64,000 nt of DNA from Oikopleura dioica (GCA_907165135.1 OU015569.1:6634001-6698000); one strand, 5' to 3'. Shown: positions 2,482 through 62,324, counted from the first letter of the stretch. Numbers and translations: made by a program. Notes: generated by a model from the letters alone, not told the origin.

Positions 2482-5400
2482 TCAGTTCTCCATGATTTCG
2501 ATTTTGAGAGGCTCAGGTTCTGTCCACGATGGTGAGTGATTGCTTGAAATCGTTCGCTGTGAGTTGATGTCATCGGAGATTGACTGAGATGAATTCGTCC
2601 CGTGCTCGTGCATTGTTTCTTCCGACCTGACGCTATTGCTCATGCTCAAGTCATTCGAAGAGGAGCAGCCTGGAGAATCAGCAGTCGGTATTTGCAGCAT
2701 AGTTGGAAACGACAGGCCTGAATTGTCAGATGTGAGAAAGGAAACAATCTAAGCTAGTCACCATTTTCCAGCGAGGGCAGCGAAGGAGTTGAAGAATGTT
2801 TCGAACGCTTGGAATCTTTAGGCTGCACTATTCCGTGGCGATTTGACATATGCGACTTGAGGTACTCGTTCCTAGACGAACAGTTATTTCTACGCAAGAA
2901 TTATCTGCTTACCGTGTGGCGGAGTAGTTGCAAAGAGCGCATTTGAATTTGCGTGCCTGCTCTGGAAAATGTAGAGCTTGATGACGAACGAGCTCAGCCT
3001 TTCTTCGATATTTTCGAACGTCGCCAAACATAGGACAAAAGTCACACGTATACTGGAAATTGTTCCAATCTGAGTCTCGCTAAAAATAAGTTAGATTTTA
3101 GATTACTTTCTTCAAATCATACTTTGCTCCATCTGCGAGCAGGAACACGTGTACAGAGTCGCCCGTCAGGAAGCTGAGCTTGCTCGGAACTTATTCGTCG
3201 ATTGTAAACACTTGGCCTGTTGTCGTAGGATCGCTGGACGAGTGTCGGCTGGCTCGCAGGTTGAGGACTTGCTCCTGTAGATGGCTGGCTAGGTTGAGTT
3301 CCTCCAAAGCCCCTGTTCAGCCGCTGTGATAGTGCGAGCTATCCAAGTTAAATGTTATTTTTTTTTATTTTTATTGGGCTTTTACCTGTGATAGAACAAA
3401 CTCTTGCAAATTTTGGCGAATGAGAAGGCGTCTCAGAAGTGCGTCTTGATTCTGCACATCAATCAATGGCTGTGATGGGTCAAGGAAACTTTGTTTGTGA
3501 TTGAACATTTTATGAAAGTCAGTTTGGTAAGCGAACATCTCAATCATTCTGGAACAGGGACACTTTTTAAAGAGCGCGTCTTTGTCATGTTGATGGCGCT
3601 GTTCCTGTCGCTCTATACATTATTTTGAAAAAAAATTCCACATACCTATAATTTTCCCCTGTCAGGTTATAAGTCAATGACGTCTCTACTCAGTTTTACT
3701 CATAAAATGAATGGAAACCCGGGTCAAGTATTGAAACTATTTGAACGAAGTATTAGGATGTAAACAGAAATAATATCTAATCACTTTCCTCCCAGAGCTA
3801 TTTTCAGAGGCGGTTTCAATTTCCTCTATTGCCATGGACGAAGGCGACTCAGTCGTCTGACAAGAGTCATCCTCTATATTCACATCCTTCGCGTCTTCCT
3901 TGATTTCAATGTTCTCTTTGCTTTCCTCTGGTTTTGACTCTTCTTTTATCTTTCGGGACTCTTCTATAGCTTTAATCACAAGTTGAGCTGTTTCTCTTTT
4001 TGGAGGAGGGAGTAATTCTAATAGATCTTCTCCAGAAATGCCTTCGCTGCATTTGTCTTTCAGTGAAACTTCAGATTGGAGTAGAAGCTCCATTGCGTGC
4101 CTGAGCTCTTCAAGGTCATTACATTTGCTATCTTCAGAAAGAAGATAGTGGAAAGGTGTCTAAAATAAAATTATTAGGATTATCATACATATAAAAATCA
4201 ACCATTTTATAAAAATTATTGATTTATACGAGTAGACTGGTTACTGTTCATTTTAGCTATTGATTTAAATTGAAAGAATTCAGAAAATGAGAAATATAAT
4301 ATTATCCTCGATAGGAAAACCTTATTGATTTTTTGAGGATAAAATTATAGTTTTGAAAATTATTTAGCCCCCGTCTAACTCCTCCGAGGAAAGCCCCTTT
4401 TGTTTCTTGGGTCTACTAGACTCTATCAAAGATTACCTGGTTCCGATTATTCTTAACATTAATATTGGCGTTCAATCCTTTCAGACAGGCAAGAGCAGAC
4501 CCCGGAGTCAAACTTCGACAAGCAAAGAAAACAGGTGGTGATCCGGTTCCATCCTTAAAATAATCGAAATACAATTAAGAGGACATTTACTAAGAATTGA
4601 CTGTTTTGGTTGGGGAAAAGTTACGATCTTCTCGAGGCTCGTTCAAGATGCAAGGAGGATAAATGTGTAATTAAGCATTCCTTTGGGCACACTAGGTGCT
4701 GTAAGGTGCTGGCTAGGCTAGTGCTTTTGGCCGTGGTGAAATAAACGGACGCGAAATGTGTGCATTGTGTTGCCTAGGCTTTTGTTTGATCGTAGTTACA
4801 AGGTACAAAGCCCGAGTCCCGGCTCAATCATTAACCTTAACTGCGAAGGGCTTCCTTTCACTGTGCGTATTTGCGCAAAAACAATCGCGCAAAGTCAATT
4901 TCAGGTGTGCCAGCTCGCGCCCCTCAACCTGTGCCTATTGCTTAAATTTCATCGATATTCCTTTCCGGATTGATTGGAGGCTGAGACCTATCGCTGCCTA
5001 GCAGCTAGAACTTTTTCCGTAATCAGTGGAAATATCCATCTATAGATGAGCCTACAAAAAAATCGGGGAAAGGGAGCGTTGGAACTCCTGTGCTGGTTTT
5101 AAAATTCTTAATCGAAGATTCCATGATAAAAAGCGATCTAAACTCACCTCCGCCGGAAGGTTAAAATCAGCTGCGTTCAAACCCAAAAGGATTGCCACAG
5201 CGTTGATGACTTCTTTTGGACAAACGGCAGCCATACCATGGACAACTGCTAGCCCTGCGTCGTTGAGTTCGTTGATAGACGCACGCTAAAGTTAAATTAT
5301 GTGAATACGTTTGATAAGTTGCATAGGAATATTCAAGTTTACTGTTTAGAATAGTGTATAGTATGCTCTGTATAATCATAATTATGAGAATTTGGTATAA

Positions 5401-5737
5401 GAAATGATGTAAACTCGAGTCAATTTTTCTGGAAAATATTTGGGATTGAAGCAGGAGCCTTCCGCTTTTGAGTTTCCAGTGTGATTTTCATTCGATTCGA
5501 GAATCTGGGTTCAGGATTTCCTAAGCTTTCTATACATGAAATAGGAGGACTGAAGTCAAACAAAGATGGAGTATGATATTCCCGTCTTTCTCTTTTGTCA
5601 AAATACCTGCATCGATAAAACTTCTCTATTATTTTAGAGGGCTTGAAATAACAATCCCTAGGGCTCACCTGAACATGTTTAGAAACGCTGACAACATCCC
5701 CACAGCAGACAGCATGGAAAAGCTCCGGTTGAGCCAT
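2482..5737 (-). CDS. Ankyrin-repeat protein with C-terminal C2H2 zinc fingers
   Basis: Exons join in frame. Ankyrin-like units: PELFHAVCCGDVVSV, INELNDAGLAVVHGMAA, DGTGSPPVFFAC, VKNNRNQ|TPFHYLL. An acidic linker is followed by C2H2 fingers YTCDFC...ELVRHQALH and FKCALCNYSATR|NEYLKSHMSNRH, then a Ser-rich tail (stop 2482). Middle exons at 4600-5000 are uncertain. Confidence 0.75.
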
Positions 5738-7385
5738 CTCCAGTTATTTCTTTAGCTTCTTCGGCAACGGAGTTTATCTGCAAAAGAAAAACTTAAACGT
5801 AAAGTAGTGAGTGTCGCCCCTTTTTTCTTTAATTTTTTCATGGCCGTAAACTTAAATAGGTTAAGCTAAGCCAAGGACGAATTTCATTCGGAGGCACGGA
5901 CCGTGAACCAGGATTTAATCACGACCGTTATTCACACTCGCGGACGCACGCGAAAAACTAACACTAAGGTTGCGTATTTACGAACAAGTATTACCAACAA
6001 GAGCTAAGCAAGCCGCTTCAAATGCATACCTGTTTTGATCAGATCTATTAAGATCAAAAAAACCTCCAAAAATCATTATTTTCTGAAAGAATTATCTGAC
6101 TGACGTTTCATAAAAAGGGAAAATTTATTTGACAAAACGTTTAATCACTTATTCAAACACCTAGTAGATCTTCTTTTTTAGTAAATTTTGGAATTCGACT
6201 TGAAGTTAAAAATGGCCGAAAATGTTAAGCAACTTACAATGGAGAAGGTTAATCTCTTAGTTTTGTTCCTGGCAGAAATATTCCTTAAAAAAAGACGTTT
6301 TAAGCGTTCTCGGCCGTGTTTTTGCCTCGAGCGTGTGAATTGGACGTCTCTTTGACTTGGCCGGTTCTAGTTTTTCGTAATAATGGTCTCGGTTGACATT
6401 GACTAAACTAAAGCCTGAATCGCCCTGGGCGAGTGCGGTCGCTCCTGGCCTAGGTGGCACAGGGTTAATATTTGCAGGTTTTGCGTTACCTACGAAAGGC
6501 GGCCCACCACACTACACCACACTTGACTTTTCGTAAAAAATTACGAACCTGCTTGGGCACACGCTGCCTAGACCCTTTTATTTGATATGGTACTCAGCCA
6601 GCAAGGCAAGTTTAGGCACACGGGCCACAAAACAAGCGCAACGCCAGAATTTGAAACTGAGAACACAAAATAATAATTGCCGAGACCTACGTCAAAATTA
6701 AATGTGTGCTCAATGCCATGATCATGCGACTGCATTCTCGCTTGACTATCAATTCACGAGCAACCATAAAATCAACATACGAGAAGACTAAAACCTTTTA
6801 CTTATCCGGAAGCAGTTCTCTCTTACATTTTTGTCTGCAACAGTGACAGACGTCCAATCTGGATGCCTTTGATAGCTAGTCGTCATCACATTCCTTGGGA
6901 CGATACTCTGCTAATGCTAATCGAACTAGACTGATAAATGAATCGTCCCTCAAATTGAGTACAAGCTTTTGCTAAATTTTGGAATAAAATGCCCTATTCG
7001 AATATTCTTTCAAAAGGTCGTTTTTACACCTGAGAACGGTTTCTATTGTTTCTATTCGTTATGAGAATTGAAAATAGTATTGGAGAACGGAGCAATTGGA
7101 ATCAAGGAAGAGAAAGCATATTTTTGGTTGTGATTTTATTTTTTTTGCTATAAAATTATAGGACACCTAATATAATAGTTTATCGATAATGTGAGTGTTT
7201 GATAATTATGATGACAGAAATAAATTCTTAGTAAAATTTGTACAGTAATCACAGTCAAAACATGTGTGAAGCAGAGAATTTAAATATTGATGTTAATTAA
7301 TTGAGCACACGGAATAATGTGACTATGACAGGGGCCGATTATCTTTACTGGTTTGGATAAATGAAAAAAGCCAGTGGATCTCTCC

Positions 7386-8828
7386 TCAAAGAGTAGGGGA
7401 AGCATTAGGGACGACAGCGTCATCGTTTTCTAAATATTAATTGCGGAACTGTTCTTTTTCCTTGATCAGTATTGTTCACTGAGTCAACACATTATTCCTA
7501 CCTGCTCCAGAGGCAAGAGAATCGCTTTCTGAGGGCTGACCAGGCTGGCCGAGAGCTTCCGGTGCAGACATGGAACTTGGTCCTTGGGGCACGCCGCCGC
7601 CGGCACCCATAGCTCCTACGTCAGATGGAGCCAGAGTAGGCACTATTCCCGCCGACTGAGTTGGAGCTGGTCCGAAACCTTGGCCATTCATCGCACCTTG
7701 GATTGCTTCTTTGTTATCCTGGTAATTATCTGAATAATTCTGTTAAGCGAAAAGCACGACACTTTGATCATCTGCGAACTCATGAATAGCTTATTGAATT
7801 GAAATGTCGGAATAATTGATTTGATTAATAAATAATCGATAATCAGGCAACTATCTGACAATGGAAAAGAAAGAGTGTACTTACACACTGCAACCCCAAT
7901 GACGATCAATGCTACGATTCCTAGAGCGATCATGTATTTCATATTCTCAAGCCAGAATTTATTCTTTAGCTTCGCCGCCTGCGTCTCGAATTGACTTGCT
8001 CCCTGGTGTAACGCGTCCGCACGATCGTCCATCATTGAAATTTTGGCGTCCCGCTCGAGTACTGCTTCCACGTTTGTCCTCATTATATCCACCACCTAAA
8101 AGATATTCCATAAAAAGCTTTTCATTAATTAGGAGTTAATCCTTAATGACTTATGATATTTACTACGTTTTCTTGGAAAATAATGAGATTTTTATGTTAT
8201 CAATGAGGAAATGATTGCTTGATTGGCGACATAACACCTTGACGAATCGGTAGAAGCTAGTAGCTAGCAAGCTATAAAGATGTTTCCTTCATTAGCCTTA
8301 TGGCGCTGTATCGACCAGCGATCGATTGCATCGCGCTTTATGCAGTCTCTCCTTCTCTTTCTCTTTTGCGCTTACTCTTCTGAGAAGAGTGCACTCTCCT
8401 GCTCTTTCCTTGCTCACTCTGTCTTTAAGCACGTACTGCTCTTAGCTCGGTTACACCTTCAATTTTACGATAACAAATGTTTATAAACTCTGCAAATAAT
8501 TTTGTAAGACGAGAAAGATTTCTTCGAAGCAATAAAAACGAGATTCTGGGAGTAATAATATTTCCTTCGTTCATTTTCTTGTTCTATTCTACTCAATATA
8601 AGATCGGATTACATTTTCTTAATTTTATATCTTTTCTATGTTGATCTTGTTAGAACATCAAAGTGCTTACCTCGTCGACTTGTGCTTTGGTTGCCTGCAT
8701 TTTTCTACTTGAACTCGGCGCTTGATTTGCATTGGTGCCATATGAGCTGAAGGAGACTTTAGTTGCATAACGCAAAGACAAACCCACGGTTGGTTCTCCT
8801 CGCCTTGGGAGAGAGGTTGATCCGACAT
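7386..8828 (-). CDS. VAMP: Synaptobrevin/VAMP R-SNARE (VAMP1/2/3-like) with optional long luminal tail
   Basis: Exons 8828-~8788, ~8746-8673, 8095-7885, 7729-7502 and 7429-7386. R-SNARE motif VDE|[44 protein letters not shown], then FWLENMK and [18 protein letters not shown]. Confidence 0.93.
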
Positions 8829-8889
8829 ATTTTTTTCGTGGGAAGAAGAAGGCCAGATGAGTCAAAGTCGTTGCAATTGAGGTTACTTA

Positions 8890-8924
8890 TCTCTCTCTAT
8901 GTTTGCCTCTCTCTCTCTCTCTTT
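8890..8924. repeat. (CT)n microsatellite upstream of VAMP
   Basis: ctctctct...ctctctctctctctct read directly from the sequence. Confidence 0.8.
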
Positions 8925-9499
8925 CTGATACAAGATACAGTGCTCGGCAGCGCGGGGAGAGTGCCCAAAGACACACTCCCTCGTCTTCGGAAAGGAGGAC
9001 TCTTCAGCGCCACCAATTGATCATCGATATTTCATTCCCGGTAGAAATGAGAAATCAACTTACACGCACACGCGCATATGCCCGCAGCTGACCGAAATGC
9101 AAAAAAAAACAGGCGGTACTCTGCAACTTAACCGCTTATTGTCATTAAAAGATTGTTACTAACAGGACGTTATATATCAAGTATATTAACGTCCCGAAAA
9201 GAGATGGGTAGGTGCTGAAATCACACGCGTGGAACTATTGATAAATGATATTCAGATGAGCCAGAGGTAGCGCTTTTCGTCAGTTCGTATATTTAGCCTT
9301 ATTACGTTCCGTTACTTAGCTACTTTTGGAAAGGGGCGACGAGACCTCAAATGTCACTTTCTTTCAAGATGAACATTTTTAATTGCGAAGATGAAATGAT
9401 CAGATATAAACATTATGAAAAATAGTAAAAAGAATTCTTTTAGTTTTTAAAATTTAAACAATTTCGTATGCTTTCTAAGGTTTACTACAAGAAATTAGA

Positions 9500-11727
9500 A
9501 GATGAAGTCGAAGGAGTTACTTTCTAGACATTCCAGAGTCAGATATTTAACAGATACGAAGCCTGCATTTGCTGAGGAAGTTATTGGGTAGAATTAAGTT
9601 CACATTACAGGTTACTTCGAAAATGGGTGAGCAGTTGCCACGTGCCGTGTCACCGAGTTGTAAAACTTCGCAATTTTACTTTCAAGTTGCCCCTGCGGCC
9701 AGGGGCAGCTGCCTCCAGCTGATTGACGAGGGGATGAACTACTACCTTTAAAAGAAGCGAATGGCCTACTCACTCCCTTCAGGCCAGTCATAGCATTTTA
9801 ATTAGCATCATCAGCAAGTAAATTTTCTAAAGAGAGTCAAGAGAAGCTAGTTATGACACAGCCACAAAATTGGCTTGTTGGGATGATCAAATTCAAGCAC
9901 CCTTTTGAACTTGACCTTTTGTCGCAAAGTTCAGTTTTTTAACAAGATTCCGTTCATCCTCACAACAGTATCGAATGTTTCAAAATCCGGGCGAAACCCG
10001 ACAAGATAGAAAATTCAAAGTGAAACCAGTAAGCAAAAGTCTCGACGAGAAACTTGGATTCTTCAAACAGACAATCGAGGAGCAGCGGCGCAGGGAACTT
10101 GCAGTCACACCCAATAGAGAACGTAAAAATGCGGCCAGGTAATTGTGTATGGAATGTTTAAAATGAGCGGAAGCAGCACAAATGCTCCTTTTATCACTTA
10201 GCTGTGGATCGAAAAGGACCGCGCGAGTATGATTGACTTTGCTAAGTTCTTCCATGTTTTCTAATCCACCAGAAAATGGAATTCTTTATTCACCACTTGT
10301 CTTCAAAGCGAAATTCTTTTTTCGGAGAATTTTTAAAAAGTTAGCAGCTTAATAATGTACACGTTAGAAATACGTTTACCACCTGTTAGAAGCTTATCAC
10401 AACGAGTCATTTATGTACTATGTAGTCACGTGTGTAATAAACTCTTCTAGAGCGCTATCGACGGACTTTGGACAACGCGCAACAAATTCTACCCACTTTA
10501 CTCATGGTACAAGGACTCAAATGGTCATTCCCAAGTTGGATAATCTGAGGCAATTATCTGAAGTTGTAAGACGAAGTTAACTCCGATTAAGATCAACGAA
10601 AATGAGTCCCATCAGTCAAACGCTGAGGAACAGTGCTCATGACTCCTGGAATTCGGAAAACGAAGGTAATATCTCTCCGCCTGAGCGACGAGAAGTCCGA
10701 CGTAATAGAACTCGTAGAGGCTGCCAGGTAACTGCTTTCGTTTCAGAGGAGAAAGCAATAACTGTTTGCAGAAAACATTTGTCATAACTCGACAATCAAA
10801 TGAAGGAGATATTTTTGACATCGAAGACGTCCTCACACCGAAGAATACAAGAGCTACCGTTGAACGCGAAGTCGTAACTCCGAGATGCAGATCAAAAAGT
10901 CGCGAGCGGCGAATTTCTAGTGCCAAACTCTATAATGGTAGGGCCACGGATTTTGTTTGAGATTTTAATGTTTTTTTTAGATGCGAAGCAAGCGAGTTCG
11001 CATGAGAAGGAGACAGAGCTTACGAAGAAAGTTTCTTCCCCAAAAGGTGATTCGATGAAAAAAAATAGAGTCGTAGTTTTCCGTTCATAATACTCCACCC
11101 TCCGTAAATGATCGAGCTGCAGATGTTCGACGCGTTTCCATCACGTGACGAACGACTCGCGCATCAAATACTCTCATTTACGTCAAGATAAGAAATTGTC
11201 AGATTATACTCATACTCGATTTCCATTCCATCTTGGAAGTCGGCGTTACATTAAGTTAATCTTTTGCTGTCTAGTCACTGGCGAAAGTAACAAGAAAAAG
11301 CGAGACGCTTCCAAGACAACGCTTGCTGAAAGCTTTAAGAACTCTATTAAAGCGCAACTAGCTTCTCTGAAGGTTAGCAGATTGAATAGGACTTTTGCGA
11401 TATTCCGAAGAATGAATGATTAAAGTATGTTTCTAGTCACGAGCATCGCAGAGTCGTCCGAAGATGAAAGGTCGCTAACTCGAAACGACATTTTCAAAAA
11501 TATTGAAACCCATTTTCTTAACAAAAATTAATAAACTCCAAGGTGAAAATACCCCTTTCAAGGCAGCGCAGCTACTTGCGTTCCGAAAAAAATATTTCGA
11601 GCCGAGAGGGCTTTATAAATCCTCACATGGCCGGGCGCAGGTCACTTTTTCAGAAAACTTCATTCTGAATCAAAGAGAAATCGCCTTTTTTGGAATAAAG
11701 CTCGACGATCAAAATGGAAGGAAATGA
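9500..11727 (+). CDS. Probable multi-exon, basic/low-complexity hypothetical protein (possibly more than one gene)
   Basis: Phase-compatible exons: DAKQASSHEKETELTKKVSSPK, VTGESNKKKRDASKTTLAESFKNSIKAQLASLK, SRASQSRPKMK, GENTPFKAAQLLAFRKKYFEPRGLYKSSHGRAQ, LDDQNGRK*. Upstream exons at 9500-10930 could not be joined unambiguously. Confidence 0.35.
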
Positions 11728-14700
11728 TGATTTCTTGGGAGATATGCCGTCGATGCCCGACATGGAGGTAAGATACAGATTACAGAGCGGGCTACGGGTA
11801 GTTAGTTCTTTTCAGAACTTCAACATGGAGAGTTTCGATATGAATATGGACTTCAATATGGACGACTTTCCAGAGATGCCTTCGTTCAACGACAGTTTCA
11901 ACTTGGAAGACTTCGAAGGAGGCGACATGACCGCTGATCTTCAGAATTTCGAGGACATGAATTCAGATGGTAAGTCCAAAAACTGCCCATAAAAATAATG
12001 CGTATAAGAGTCTGAGGCAGGGCTGGTAAATTCGCGTCCTAAAATCTGTCGAAAATTTTTAGTGCACTAAAATTAGTGCGCGAATTTATTTTGTCGAGAC
12101 TTTAGTGACTTTCGCGTCTCTTTCGCGTGTGTCTCGAAAAGTGTCGAAAATAAGGGCTGCTGATTGGCCCGCCAATGAGCGCGGGCTCTTTAATTCTAAA
12201 GAATACGTAAGTTTGAGAATATCAAACTTCGCTTATATTAGAAATTCAAAAAGTTTGGTTTCAATCAAGTGGATTGGGTAATTAAGGGCGTGAATTTTAA
12301 TATGAAGTCAAAAAAGACTTTGTCAATTCATTTGTTAATTTTCTTTATAAATATAAAGTAACAAATATAGCCTATATTATATAGGGAAAAATACAATTCA
12401 ACTTTTGTTTGCAACTCTTTTTGTGCTGGATTTGAATGATAAGCTTAGACTTTTAGCCTAAGATAAGCTTTCTTAGGGAGGTCTTCTCCCTAATTTTTTT
12501 TATTGAAGGGCCATCCGCAGCTTGTTATTCCTGCTTTTTCCCTTTCTTGTCAATCTTCTTCTTGTCATTGTTTGACTAATTTCAGTGTCCTCAAAAGTCT
12601 GCAGCTGGAGGAGCCTTGTGCGAATTGTTGATATAATTCTATATTTAAAAAATCAAATTTATTCTATAATTCAGAAGGGAGATCTTCTCCCAAGTTCATG
12701 CTTACCTTGTAATTCAGAAAGCAGATTTCCTCCCAATACATTTTACTCAAAAAACTTACATTGCTATATGATAGAAACTCGGTGTTCCAAGCCTTTGTCA
12801 AGCCCCTTAAATTAAAAAAATCAAGGAACTGGGCTGAGACGGCCCGAAGGGCTGTCAAGCCCATTAAATTAAAAAATCAAGGAAGTAAGCGTGAATTTAG
12901 GAGGAGACCTCCCTTCTAAATTATCAAATAAATATGATTCTATGAATAAAGATACTGAATAGAGATACTGAGAAGAGCTCTTAAGACCACGAAAATAGAA
13001 CGTATCAGTCAAGGCTGCTCTAGCTTCAGAGACTGTTGAGGAGAAGTTGTCGGACAACGACAAGAAGAAGGGCAAAAAATGAAGAAAAGCAGGAAGATCC
13101 AGCTGCTGATGGCCCTGCGATAAAAAAATTAGGGAGAGGACCTCCCTAGGCTAGGGACCCTAGCAAAGCTTATCTTACCTCATCATTTAACTCGACAAAA
13201 AGAATTTCCAACAAAAGTTGACTTTTATTCTTTTCAACTTATTTGTTACTAAATAAGTAATTTCTTTAAAATTAAATTGTGTCATATTTACGATGCATTG
13301 ATTTTTATATATCTAGCAGTTTCAGTTTGAAGAAATTCTTCCCTGATCAAAATCGTCTTCCATGAAACTATCATCCGGGAAGAGCCTATTGGATGATGAA
13401 AAAGAGCCTCTTTTTTCGCGTCTTTAGTGCTAATCAGCTCTCGAAAAGTCACTAATTTCCCCAAGAGGAAAAATTAGTGTCATTTTAGTGCACTAAAGGC
13501 GCGAAAGACGCGAAAATGTCTCCAAAAAAAAATTAGTGCGCTAATTTTTTTTTCTTCGAGAGAAAATAGTGCGCTAATTTACCAGCCCTGGTCTGAGGGT
13601 GAAACAGGATTTGAAGAAGAGGATGTTTCGCAGGAAGGCGCTTCCCAAGAGGAGGATGAAGAAATTCATGATGAAGAAAATTTCGAGAGCGAAGATGCGA
13701 GCGATGAATCCATGACCCCTCAAGAGTACGACAACGATGAGAACGGAGGCGAGGGAGACGGAGAGAATAATTGTGCATCGAGTGGAAAATTTCCGGAAGA
13801 CTCGGACGAACTCGACAAGGAGTTAATCAAAAAGAATGAGGAGTTACTCCTTGCTCAATCTCGAAGAAAGAAATCTGGCATCGATCTTCTTCCATTGCGT
13901 GATCCAGAGAGCACCGACTCATCCCAAGAAACGTAAGATTTCTACGGAAGAAATACTCTAATTTAAGGTATTTTTAGAATGATGAGACCACGAAAGTCAA
14001 ACCTCAAGAAAGGAAAAGCAGAAAATAAGACACGGAAAAGTGTGGAGTTCGCAACCCCGATTGAAAAAGTGTCGCGGATCGAGTCCCGAAAGTCCGTGGG
14101 CAGCAAGAAGAAATATGATCGAAGACTCGTAGACGAGGAGGATGAGCCATTCGTCAAGGAAATTAAGGAGTTTCTGAGTATGTCGGAAATGTTTTTAAGC
14201 TCTAACTATAATATTTAGACAAGCCGCGATCGCAAAGCAACCTTGATGTTTTGCGCCATCGACGAGTTCAACAAGGCATGGCTTTTTCAGATGCATTCAT
14301 AACATCCCAATCTACTATATAATTCTTGTCTCCGAAAAAAAGCCTTGAAAGGAATGATTGAAAATTTCCATTCTAAAGCATCAAGACTTGACACAAAAAA
14401 GATGGTTGCAAACACTTCTAAAAAAACAGAAGTTCGAAAAACGATGATCAACTTGGGAAAAACTCAAGGAAAGGATATCTCTTCGCTTTTGTTTTATAAA
14501 CAAAAATAAAGATAAAAGGGATATCCTTAAGAAGGAGAGACAGTGGCTAAAGTCGCCGGGCTCGAACCTTTTCAGAATAAGGCGAAAGCATCAGTCCGAA
14601 AACTTGAACAGCGGTGGGAAAATGAGAATGAAAATTTCGATCATCTTCGAAAGCAACTGCCCAGCGCTATGACCGTTCGTCAGAGCCAAGTTTCGCTGAG

Positions 14701-14897
14701 GATTTCTGTCGCTGGCAAAAATCTGATTCTTGAGCAGATGCGAGAAGCATGGATCAAGAAGAGAGAGGATCACCAACGAAGAAAGGTAAGGCAAGTTATA
14801 ATCAGTATTATTTTTAAATCTGCATTTTTAGTTGAAAGTCAGGGAGCAGATCAAATCAGCCATGACGATGCTCAAACAACTCGGAGCGAAGAACTGA
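11714..14897 (+). CDS. Acidic low-complexity protein with basic/coiled-coil C-terminus, interrupted by a transposon in exon 3
   Basis: MEGNDDFLGDMPSMPDME|NFNMESFDM...NSD G|, intron 11970-12008, then ES[TE insertion]EGETGFEEEDV...; later exons RPRKSNLKKG..., EGETVAKVAGLEPFQNK..., LKVREQIKSAMTMLKQLGAKN* (stop 14895-14897). The frame is continuous across the insertion site once the element and one TSD are removed. Confidence 0.7.
12018..13590. mobile_element. Non-autonomous hAT-like DNA transposon with foldback (nested inverted-repeat) structure, 1573 bp
   Basis: 15-bp perfect TIR CAGGGCTGGTAAATT / AATTTACCAGCCCTG; 8-bp TSD GTCTGAGG (12010-12017 and 13591-13598); subterminal TTAGTGCACTAA/TAGTGCGC repeats; internal inverted pairs (~12462-12515 vs ~13108-13175; ~12668-12706 vs ~12885-12923). 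No transposase ORF. An 8-bp TSD with a CAG terminus is typical of hAT. Confidence 0.92.
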
Positions 14898-15236
14898 AGA
14901 AGAGACAATGTTTCTGCCTCACTTTCCTTTTTGATCTCCTAGATGAATTCCATTTTTTATTCCAATTAATAAACAATTGTACTCTTTATGGGTTTTTTAA
15001 ATCTAGATTTATTTAATTTTGATAATATTACTAGACAGTCAAGTCGACTTATAAAGTCGGAAGAAAGTAAGAAAGGAAAAGATAGATAGAAAAGAAAATA
15101 GTAGTAGAGAGAAGAATATGATAGAGGTTTAAAAGATATACAAAAGCTTTGTGAGGAAAAGACATAAGAGATAGAAAGAGAAAGTATATAAGAGAAACAG
15201 AATGTGTAAAAGTGGAATTAGAGACGTGCACTTTCC

Positions 15237-16459
<1,223 letters not shown>

Positions 16460-61130: not shown

Positions 61131-62324
61131 TCTTTCATTCTGCAGCTGAAAATCCAAAAAGTTTTTTTCAAAAGTAATTGTAAATCTTGATAGGTAAGTG
61201 TTCAAGTTTCCAGCGATATGTTTTGTAAATTTTTGCTTGCCGGAAACGCAAGTTAGAGCTAAAAATCTTGAGCGCTCTTAATCACACTCCGAATTTTGCG
61301 CGCCGCGCGGGGCTGAATAATGCATTGTGGTCCCCTCACCCGACCCCGTGTTTTGAGCGCTTAGTTGCGCGCCCGTGTATTGAGAAGTTAATTTGAATAG
61401 GCATTCAGACTTTTTGAAATTCATCAAAGCGGCAAATAACAAGCCCTTCCCTTTGTCTTCTTAGAGAACAAACTTAAAAACAGTCGGACGCTGACGTAAA
61501 TGAATCTGAAACAAAAATGCTCACTCATTGCTTTTAAAACAAGAAAAATAAGTTACAAATTAATACAAAGACAAGGAAAGTGCGCTATTTTACCAACTCT
61601 GATATAGATAGTAAAGTCTATTAAGAATATGAGAATCTTTCTCGTTTGAAGATTCTCGATCCACGATCAATAATCATAAATCAACGGGTGAACGTTGTTG
61701 TCAAGCATAGATTTACAAGGATTAGCGAGAAAAATTCGCATTGTTGGCAGTGGTTTGCTAAAGTTGTACTTACCCAAGTATGGCGAGGAGTGCATAAACG
61801 ATCTGATTGCCAAATTCGTTGCTCGTAATTATTAATATCACTGCAGTCAGACTAAAGACAAAATGGGGATTAGCTTATCTTTAAAGTTTAAACATAAAAA
61901 GCTAAAACGTTAGGGTTGGCTTCGAACTGACAAAATAGCTGTTGAATCTTACAGGCGATATAAATTTGAGTTTCCCTAGCATATAAATTTAGATTTTGTT
62001 CGTTACCTTTTGCAGAGTATGGATAGCAGTATCAAACTAATATCTGTCTTCTCTTTTTCATTTCGGAAGCGAGCGAATTGTTTTTCACCATCATAAATCA
62101 AAGTATAATTCTCAACGTGTTTTCCCTGTTTCTGGTTGCGAGGTTGGGGGCTCCTTTCTTTTTTTCAAACTTGGCCTAATCATCTCTTTTCTCTAGTCAT
62201 AAAACAAATTGCCAGTGGAGCGCTTTTCACACATTCAGTCCTCTTCGCTGAAATATCAACTCATGGATTCCAAAAATATTCATATTCTTATAAAAATAGT
62301 GCTCTTTTAATTTGACTTTTACAT

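Follow-up and report, generated by a model that had tools for sequence, protein, structure and literature searches.

That the terminal inverted repeats (TIRs) of a transposon can supply splice sites is not a new idea, and precedents exist in maize and in algae. Exonic insertions of the maize hAT element Ds1 offer three donor and two acceptor sites, none more than 35 bp from an end of the element (Wessler 1991, summarised in PMC5432752), and algal introners are elements with TIRs and target site duplications (TSDs) that generate introns, one family in Aureococcus carrying both splice sites and adding 4 + 8 = 12 nt, i.e. four residues (PMC9860276). Miniature inverted-repeat transposable elements (MITEs) are the origin of most lineage-specific introns in the larvacean Fritillaria borealis (Henriet 2019, reviewed in PMC11282704). 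Here we analyse a 64-kb stretch of the Oikopleura dioica genome (GCA_907165135.1, OU015569.1:6634001-6698000; hereafter the window, with positions counted from its first letter), in which a 1573-bp non-autonomous hAT-like foldback element (12018-13590, no strand assigned, bounded by TIRs and TSDs) interrupts a protein-coding exon and carries in its TIRs both a candidate donor and a candidate acceptor.

The element lies between two plus-strand copies of the 8-bp target GTCTGAGG, at 12010-12017 and 13591-13598, the left copy falling within the first 9 nt of exon 3 of the host gene. The left TIR, CAGGGCTGGTAAATT (12018-12032, plus strand), is matched at 15 of 15 positions by its reverse complement at 13576-13590 (minus strand), the sole perfect pair of that 15-mer within the window, and beyond the TIRs the inverted arms run on imperfectly to 36 nt with 81% complementarity. 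The left TIR contains a candidate donor, CTG|GTAAAT (GT 12026-27), and the right TIR a candidate acceptor, ATTTACCAG| (AG 13584-85), so that at sequence level both candidate splice sites reside on the element, as introners carry or recruit theirs. Removal of 12026-13585 (1560 nt) would leave a scar of 21 nt, to which the left TIR contributes 8 nt, the right TIR 5 nt and the second TSD copy 8 nt; joining 12025 to 13586 gives ...DESEAGLPWSEGET..., in frame and stop-free, with a predicted product ...NSDESE-AGLPWSE-GETGF... in which the residues AGLPWSE are the seven added. Since the TIR is perfectly symmetric where both sites lie, insertion in either orientation would leave an identical scar. The TSD, the exact TIR pair, the splice arithmetic and its independence of orientation had all been put forward in a preliminary description of the locus, and each is borne out by direct reading.

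With maize Ac/Ds the element shares cut-and-paste transposition, an 8-bp TSD, short subterminal repeats, non-autonomous derivatives and the start of its TIR, CAGGG here as against C/TAGGGATGAAA at the ends of Ac (PMC3260210). As in Ds1, the (here candidate) splice sites lie within approximately 35 bp of the ends, and after removal (here predicted) the TSD and a few bases of the element stay behind. Ds1 differs in belonging to a plant and in that its splicing, with several alternative products, was demonstrated experimentally, whereas the present case is known from sequence alone; also unlike Ds1, the 15-bp TIR that contains both candidate sites here is perfectly symmetric, and the outcome is thereby the same in either orientation. 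The introners of Micromonas and Aureococcus (Huff 2016, Gozashti 2022, PMC9860276) are likewise non-autonomous elements with TIRs and TSDs that become introns upon insertion, a step for which the element described here is a candidate, and the in-frame addition of 4 nt plus an 8-bp TSD in Aureococcus follows the same logic as the 13 + 8 = 21 nt found here. However, introners are short elements that number in the hundreds to thousands, reside mostly within genes and have been verified as spliced, whilst the present element measures 1.57 kb and its splice sites are candidates.

The introns of Fritillaria borealis offer a comparison within the appendicularian tunicates, with TIRs and TSDs at lineage-specific positions and hairpin-forming ends that bring the splice sites together. 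They differ in having non-canonical AG-AC and AG-AT ends at the element boundaries, which need a modified spliceosome, whereas the candidate sites here form a canonical GT-AG pair set back from the element boundaries by 8 and 5 nt. In Caenorhabditis elegans, Tc1 was reportedly found by Rushforth and Anderson, in 1996, to be removed from mutant pre-mRNAs by cryptic splicing; this too is an exonic DNA transposon spliced out imprecisely near its ends to give partially functional alleles, although Tc1 belongs to the Tc1/mariner superfamily and its splice sites are reportedly cryptic and heterogeneous. What is particular to the Oikopleura locus is the placement of both sites in a symmetric TIR, with the orientation independence that this brings, the large size of the element, and the continued segregation of the allele in an animal noted for the speed of its intron gain. 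Calling it a distinctive case, as was initially done, nevertheless overstated matters, since exonic maize Ds1 (PMC5432752) and the Aureococcus introner (PMC9860276) precede it.

An empty allele, which the preliminary description had envisaged in other haplotypes or populations, was found repeatedly. The exact empty site (a single GTCTGAGG, no element) is present in seven contigs, namely one from X2, a DNA run carrying the same species label but originating from a different study, three of the same lineage (L126, L127 and L128, from marine metagenomes) and three of a sister lineage (L121, L122 and L123). The 3855-nt X2 contig matches 11400-12009 and then 13591-14998, skipping 1581 nt that correspond to the element plus one TSD copy; eight letters at the joint fit both sides, and the flanks differ from the window by approximately 0.5%. 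The same-lineage metagenome contigs have flanks 98-99% identical to the window, read ...TATAAGAGTCTGAGGGTGAAAC... across the site and encode the window's 74-aa exon-3 piece exactly, and the sister-lineage contigs, approximately 83% identical, span the site, are empty and conserve DESEGETGF. Across the boundary of intron 2 and exon 3 the empty alleles read AAG|AGTCTGAGGGTGAAAC. These contigs establish the insertion as real and the empty site as the ancestral state. An old, fixed intron is rejected by empty alleles at 98-99.5% flank identity, and the insertion allele is very recent and of low frequency; that the element represents a young, polymorphic, hAT-like exonic insertion we regard as virtually certain.

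Assignment to the hAT superfamily proceeds from sequence features. Short hAT TIRs start 5'-YARNG, and the TIR start found here, CAGGG, is of this type. Compared with the TSD consensus nTnnnnAn, the TSD GTCTGAGG agrees in its T at position 2 and disagrees in its G at position 7, a comparison that involves one site only. The motif TTAGTGC has seven of its 11 matches in the window within approximately 170 bp of the element ends, and a repeat search located subterminal repeats on both sides (no strand assigned), comprising TTAGTGC motifs with two copies of CTTTCGCGTCT on the left (12056-12130), mirrored by TTAGTGC motifs with 2.3 copies of AAAGACGCG on the right (13413-13575); these short repeats are of the putative transposase-binding type known from hAT elements. 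Within the element there is no open reading frame (ORF) longer than 81 aa and no transposase, and a database search with its internal ORFs returned no record and no homologues; an autonomous element is rejected for want of a transposase ORF. The 8-bp TSD, the CAGGG TIR, the subterminal repeats and the deletion derivatives described below fit membership, as a non-autonomous element, of the hAT superfamily; that it is hAT-like was first proposed in the preliminary description.

The foldback architecture likewise proposed at the outset was recovered by computation. The interior consists of nine collinear inverted-repeat pairs, and the element RNA has a minimum free energy of -575 kcal/mol against -354 +/- 9 for 20 shuffles (z ~ -25). 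Its predicted fold is one long hairpin with 141 long-range pairs for which i+j is nearly constant, the two TIRs pairing base for base, and the long collinear arms forming this predicted hairpin are of the foldback type. Near the centre of the foldback, the stretch 12731-12972 (core 12796-12909; no strand assigned; repeat family D8) contains two directly repeated copies of a unit of approximately 57 nt, TGTCAAGCCC.TTAAATTAAAAAA.TCAAGGA..., which is hyper-abundant in X2, where its summed contig depth reaches approximately 780,000 (single-copy flanks, 73) and back-joints are numerous, spaced approximately 50-57 nt apart. From this depth and these back-joints the unit probably also recurs in very large numbers elsewhere in the genome, in tandem or dispersed form.

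The interrupted exon is a genuine coding exon, entered by the element after 9 nt as had been claimed, and its exon/intron structure is conserved in a sister-lineage contig. On the plus strand, the host gene begins with an ATG at 11714 and comprises exon 1 (11714-11767), intron 1 (11768-11815, 48 nt), exon 2 (11816-11969), intron 2 (11970-12008, 39 nt, GTAAGT...TATAAG, phase 1, conserved in L121 and L123) and the first 9 nt of exon 3 (12009-12017), at which point the TIR intervenes; the ORF is continuous across the joins of exons 1 and 2. Introns of this organism measure 40-50 nt. The remainder of exon 3 (13599-13932), identified by translation, encodes an acidic, low-complexity sequence to which the relative P0001 is 81% identical, and the gene continues through 13933-14900 with an intron at 13933-13977, an exon at 13978-14177 and further exons to a stop near 14897, a 3' exon model that is provisional, GT-AG introns alone not fitting it. 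Between 14219 and 14545 the frame shifts around 14275-14340 and 14495-14540, and the data suggest that the 3' half of the gene holds non-canonical introns, e.g. AAG|GCATGG. Directly downstream, and convergent with the host gene, lies a highly conserved actin gene (15237-16440, minus strand) whose single short intron is close to the 5' end.

Among 1.8 billion cluster representatives, the sole relative of the exon-3 protein is P0001, a 76-aa ORF fragment encoded by contigs from marine metagenomes and one Logan assembly. These contigs are approximately 82-84% identical to the window over exons, introns and the upstream region alike, and we therefore assign them to a sister lineage. The sister lineage (contig L121 included) keeps the ATG and the reading frame as well as each of the four introns examined, indels between the lineages measure 3, 6 and 3 nt in exons and 4, 2, 1, 1, 7 and 1 nt outside them, and dN/dS is 0.137 over 249 codons. 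By these sequence comparisons the host is a functional gene under purifying selection. It is Oikopleura-restricted and encodes an acidic, low-complexity protein, for which a Pfam scan gave nothing above threshold and a weak match to Mis14 below the cut-off; Rfam yielded no match within 11400-15000. One of the in-frame 3-nt indels between the lineages lies approximately 50 nt downstream of the insertion, and the region thus tolerates changes in length.

From these observations we propose that a non-autonomous hAT-type foldback transposon was cut and pasted into the target GTCTGAGG, 1 nt into exon 3, and that the target was duplicated on insertion to give the present flanking copies. Pre-mRNA from the carrier allele would then be rescued, at least in part, by ordinary U2-type splicing from the TIR donor CTG|GTAAAT to the TIR acceptor TTTACCAG|, taking out 1560 nt and retaining 21, and AGLPWSE would be inserted into an acidic, disordered part of the protein where in-frame indels between lineages are likewise tolerated. 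The product with the 21-nt scar would compete with non-productive products and with other in-frame routes, and the outcome may be a leaky allele resembling maize Ds insertions rather than a clean intron. That the 12025/13586 junction is made at an appreciable level is, on the sequence features, a plausible proposition that falls somewhat short of being probable.

Several observations favour this splice. CTG|GTAAAT makes a good donor, and donors of the GTAAA type are found repeatedly among the ORF-joining short-intron candidates in the window, a set contaminated by false introns through three attempts at a matrix and hence of qualitative use only. The conserved acceptor of intron 2, TATAAG, is as pyrimidine-poor as that of the TIR, and the 21-nt scar falls in the acidic stretch with in-frame indels between lineages, which speaks for its being tolerated. 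The uniform termini of the family in X2, described below, and the precedent of exonic Ds1 (PMC5432752) also count in favour.

The most serious competitor, to which we attach the same tentative weight as to the TIR-to-TIR splice, is a plain loss-of-function or strongly hypomorphic allele, in which the element is not productively removed and read-through, a mini-intron or internal termination leads to a stop and to decay. Such an allele would persist only through extreme youth, rarity, shelter, or the dispensability of the gene in the sequenced animal. A number of results count in its favour and weigh against rescue by splicing. In the predicted fold both candidate sites are sequestered in the perfect 15-bp stem of the hairpin (z = -25), the donor GU (12026-27) pairing with 13581-82 and the acceptor AG with 12023-24. 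A strong proximal acceptor, TTTTTAG (12056-12062, plus strand), competes for the TIR donor, with which it would form a 37-nt mini-intron (12026-12062) followed by a premature stop; read-through reaches a stop after 16 codons of element sequence, and AATAAA occurs inside the element at 12927 and 12945. Purifying selection on the host gene implies that its disruption should be selected against. The filled allele was found in none of the samples outside the window that span the site (four same-lineage, three sister-lineage), with the caveat that assemblers break at repeats, and no contig carries the 74-aa ORF preceded by the right TIR, as would be expected of a broken filled contig; all-empty samples are equally compatible with a deleterious allele and with one that is simply young.

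A search specific to RNA runs found the exon in none of those listed, and none of the 1.8 billion protein representatives is a transcript-derived or annotated full-length protein with exon 3. Three RNA runs (X11, X12 and X13; 2026, oligo-dT, same species label) contributed 0, 0 and 1 reads on 3.6 kb that include all flanking exons, and so constitute no test of splicing. Against loss of function, however, stand the close match of the TIR donor to those used elsewhere in the window and the organism's tolerance of weak acceptors, exemplified by intron 2 of the host gene itself. A slighter, conditional argument is that the reference animal was a mature male (PMC8008620), which, were the locus X-linked, would have had no other allele.

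Nor is the geometry of the TIR-to-TIR splice unique at the locus, a further point against it. When 16 GT/GC donors (12009-12119, after removal of intron 2) and, in addition, the intron-2 donor at 11970 were combined with 23 AG acceptors (13480-13699), 67 of the 391 pairings were open and in frame; frame preservation alone is weak evidence, its prior being 1 in 3 for a single insertion. Two of these routes deserve separate mention, and rescue by one or other of them appears unlikely, though by no means negligible. One is a GC-AG intron built from the TSD, with donor GAG|GC at 12017 and acceptor TCTGAG| at 13597, which would be scarless and restore the exact wild-type mRNA in the manner of classical introners. 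The other pairs the intron-2 donor (11970) with an acceptor AG at 13606-07, deleting 18 nt so that DESEGETG becomes DG; it uses the strongest donor of the region (ATG|GTAAGT) and avoids a 17-nt micro-exon. Both are open and in frame, and approximately 11% of introns are non-GT/AG in the Okinawa Oikopleura dioica assembly (PMC8008620). On the other hand, the GC donor stands in a weak context, GCAGGG, within the same TIR stem, and the route from intron 2 can operate only if the conserved acceptor at 12008 is skipped. That the element reflects an assembly artefact or somatic insertion in place of a heritable allele is scarcely credible, for although the filled state has been seen in the reference sequence and nowhere else, a misassembly, which we reject, would not yield a perfect 8-bp TSD exactly flanking perfect TIRs, and the consensus assembly of one animal requires majority read support.

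A more ambitious reading of TIR-to-TIR splicing would make the CAGGGCTGGTAAATT family a genuine introner of animals, with a symmetric TIR shaped so that exonic insertions are spliced out in either orientation and any phase with a stop-free 21-nt scar; such hAT elements would then be a main source of the exceptionally fast intron gain in Oikopleura and the present allele an intron caught at birth, still polymorphic. We consider this improbable as matters stand. The family is multi-copy in X2, where summed contig depth, a rough indicator that does not equate to copy number, is approximately 3,000-14,000 against 73 for the flanks and peaks at the termini. Joints in X2 such as 12060 to 13397 and 12265 to 13356 resemble internally deleted derivatives elsewhere in that genome. 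The termini are uniform across the family, with no variant at 5% or above in 12018-12065 at approximately 150x the single-copy summed depth, and for 13546-13590 the sole change listed is a 1-nt deletion at 13545. Within the window no second copy of the element was found. The 120 metagenome loci returned for the exact 15-nt TIR were considered as family copies and rejected, as they have nothing in common beyond the 15-mer and are attributable to chance. Elsewhere in the window, at 61579-61601 (minus-strand end CAGAGTTGGTAAAAT), the 23-nt AGTGCGCTATTTTACCAACTCTG agrees with the right end of the element in 20 of its 23 nucleotides; neither an inverted partner nor a matching TSD occurs within 5 kb, and by its sequence it resembles a solitary end from a related hAT family. 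The GGTAAA donor motif is retained in its TIR, and AA replaces the acceptor AG.

The contigs L126 and L127 are Tara Oceans contigs, 98-99% identical to the locus. Since open-ocean contigs are this close, DNA of the same lineage from the wild can be sought in open-ocean metagenomes, which may therefore be mined for genotyping the presence or absence of transposon insertions.

Oikopleura is a textbook case of massive intron turnover, for which we know of no demonstrated source, and the origin of new spliceosomal introns in animals is still poorly documented. The locus described here amounts to a natural experiment on whether a transposon insertion becomes an intron immediately, for in a gene under selection an exonic transposon with candidate splice sites in its ends segregates alongside an intact empty allele. 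Should the element go unspliced, the locus would stand as a young insertion allele, and would mainly show that hAT elements are currently active in this lineage.

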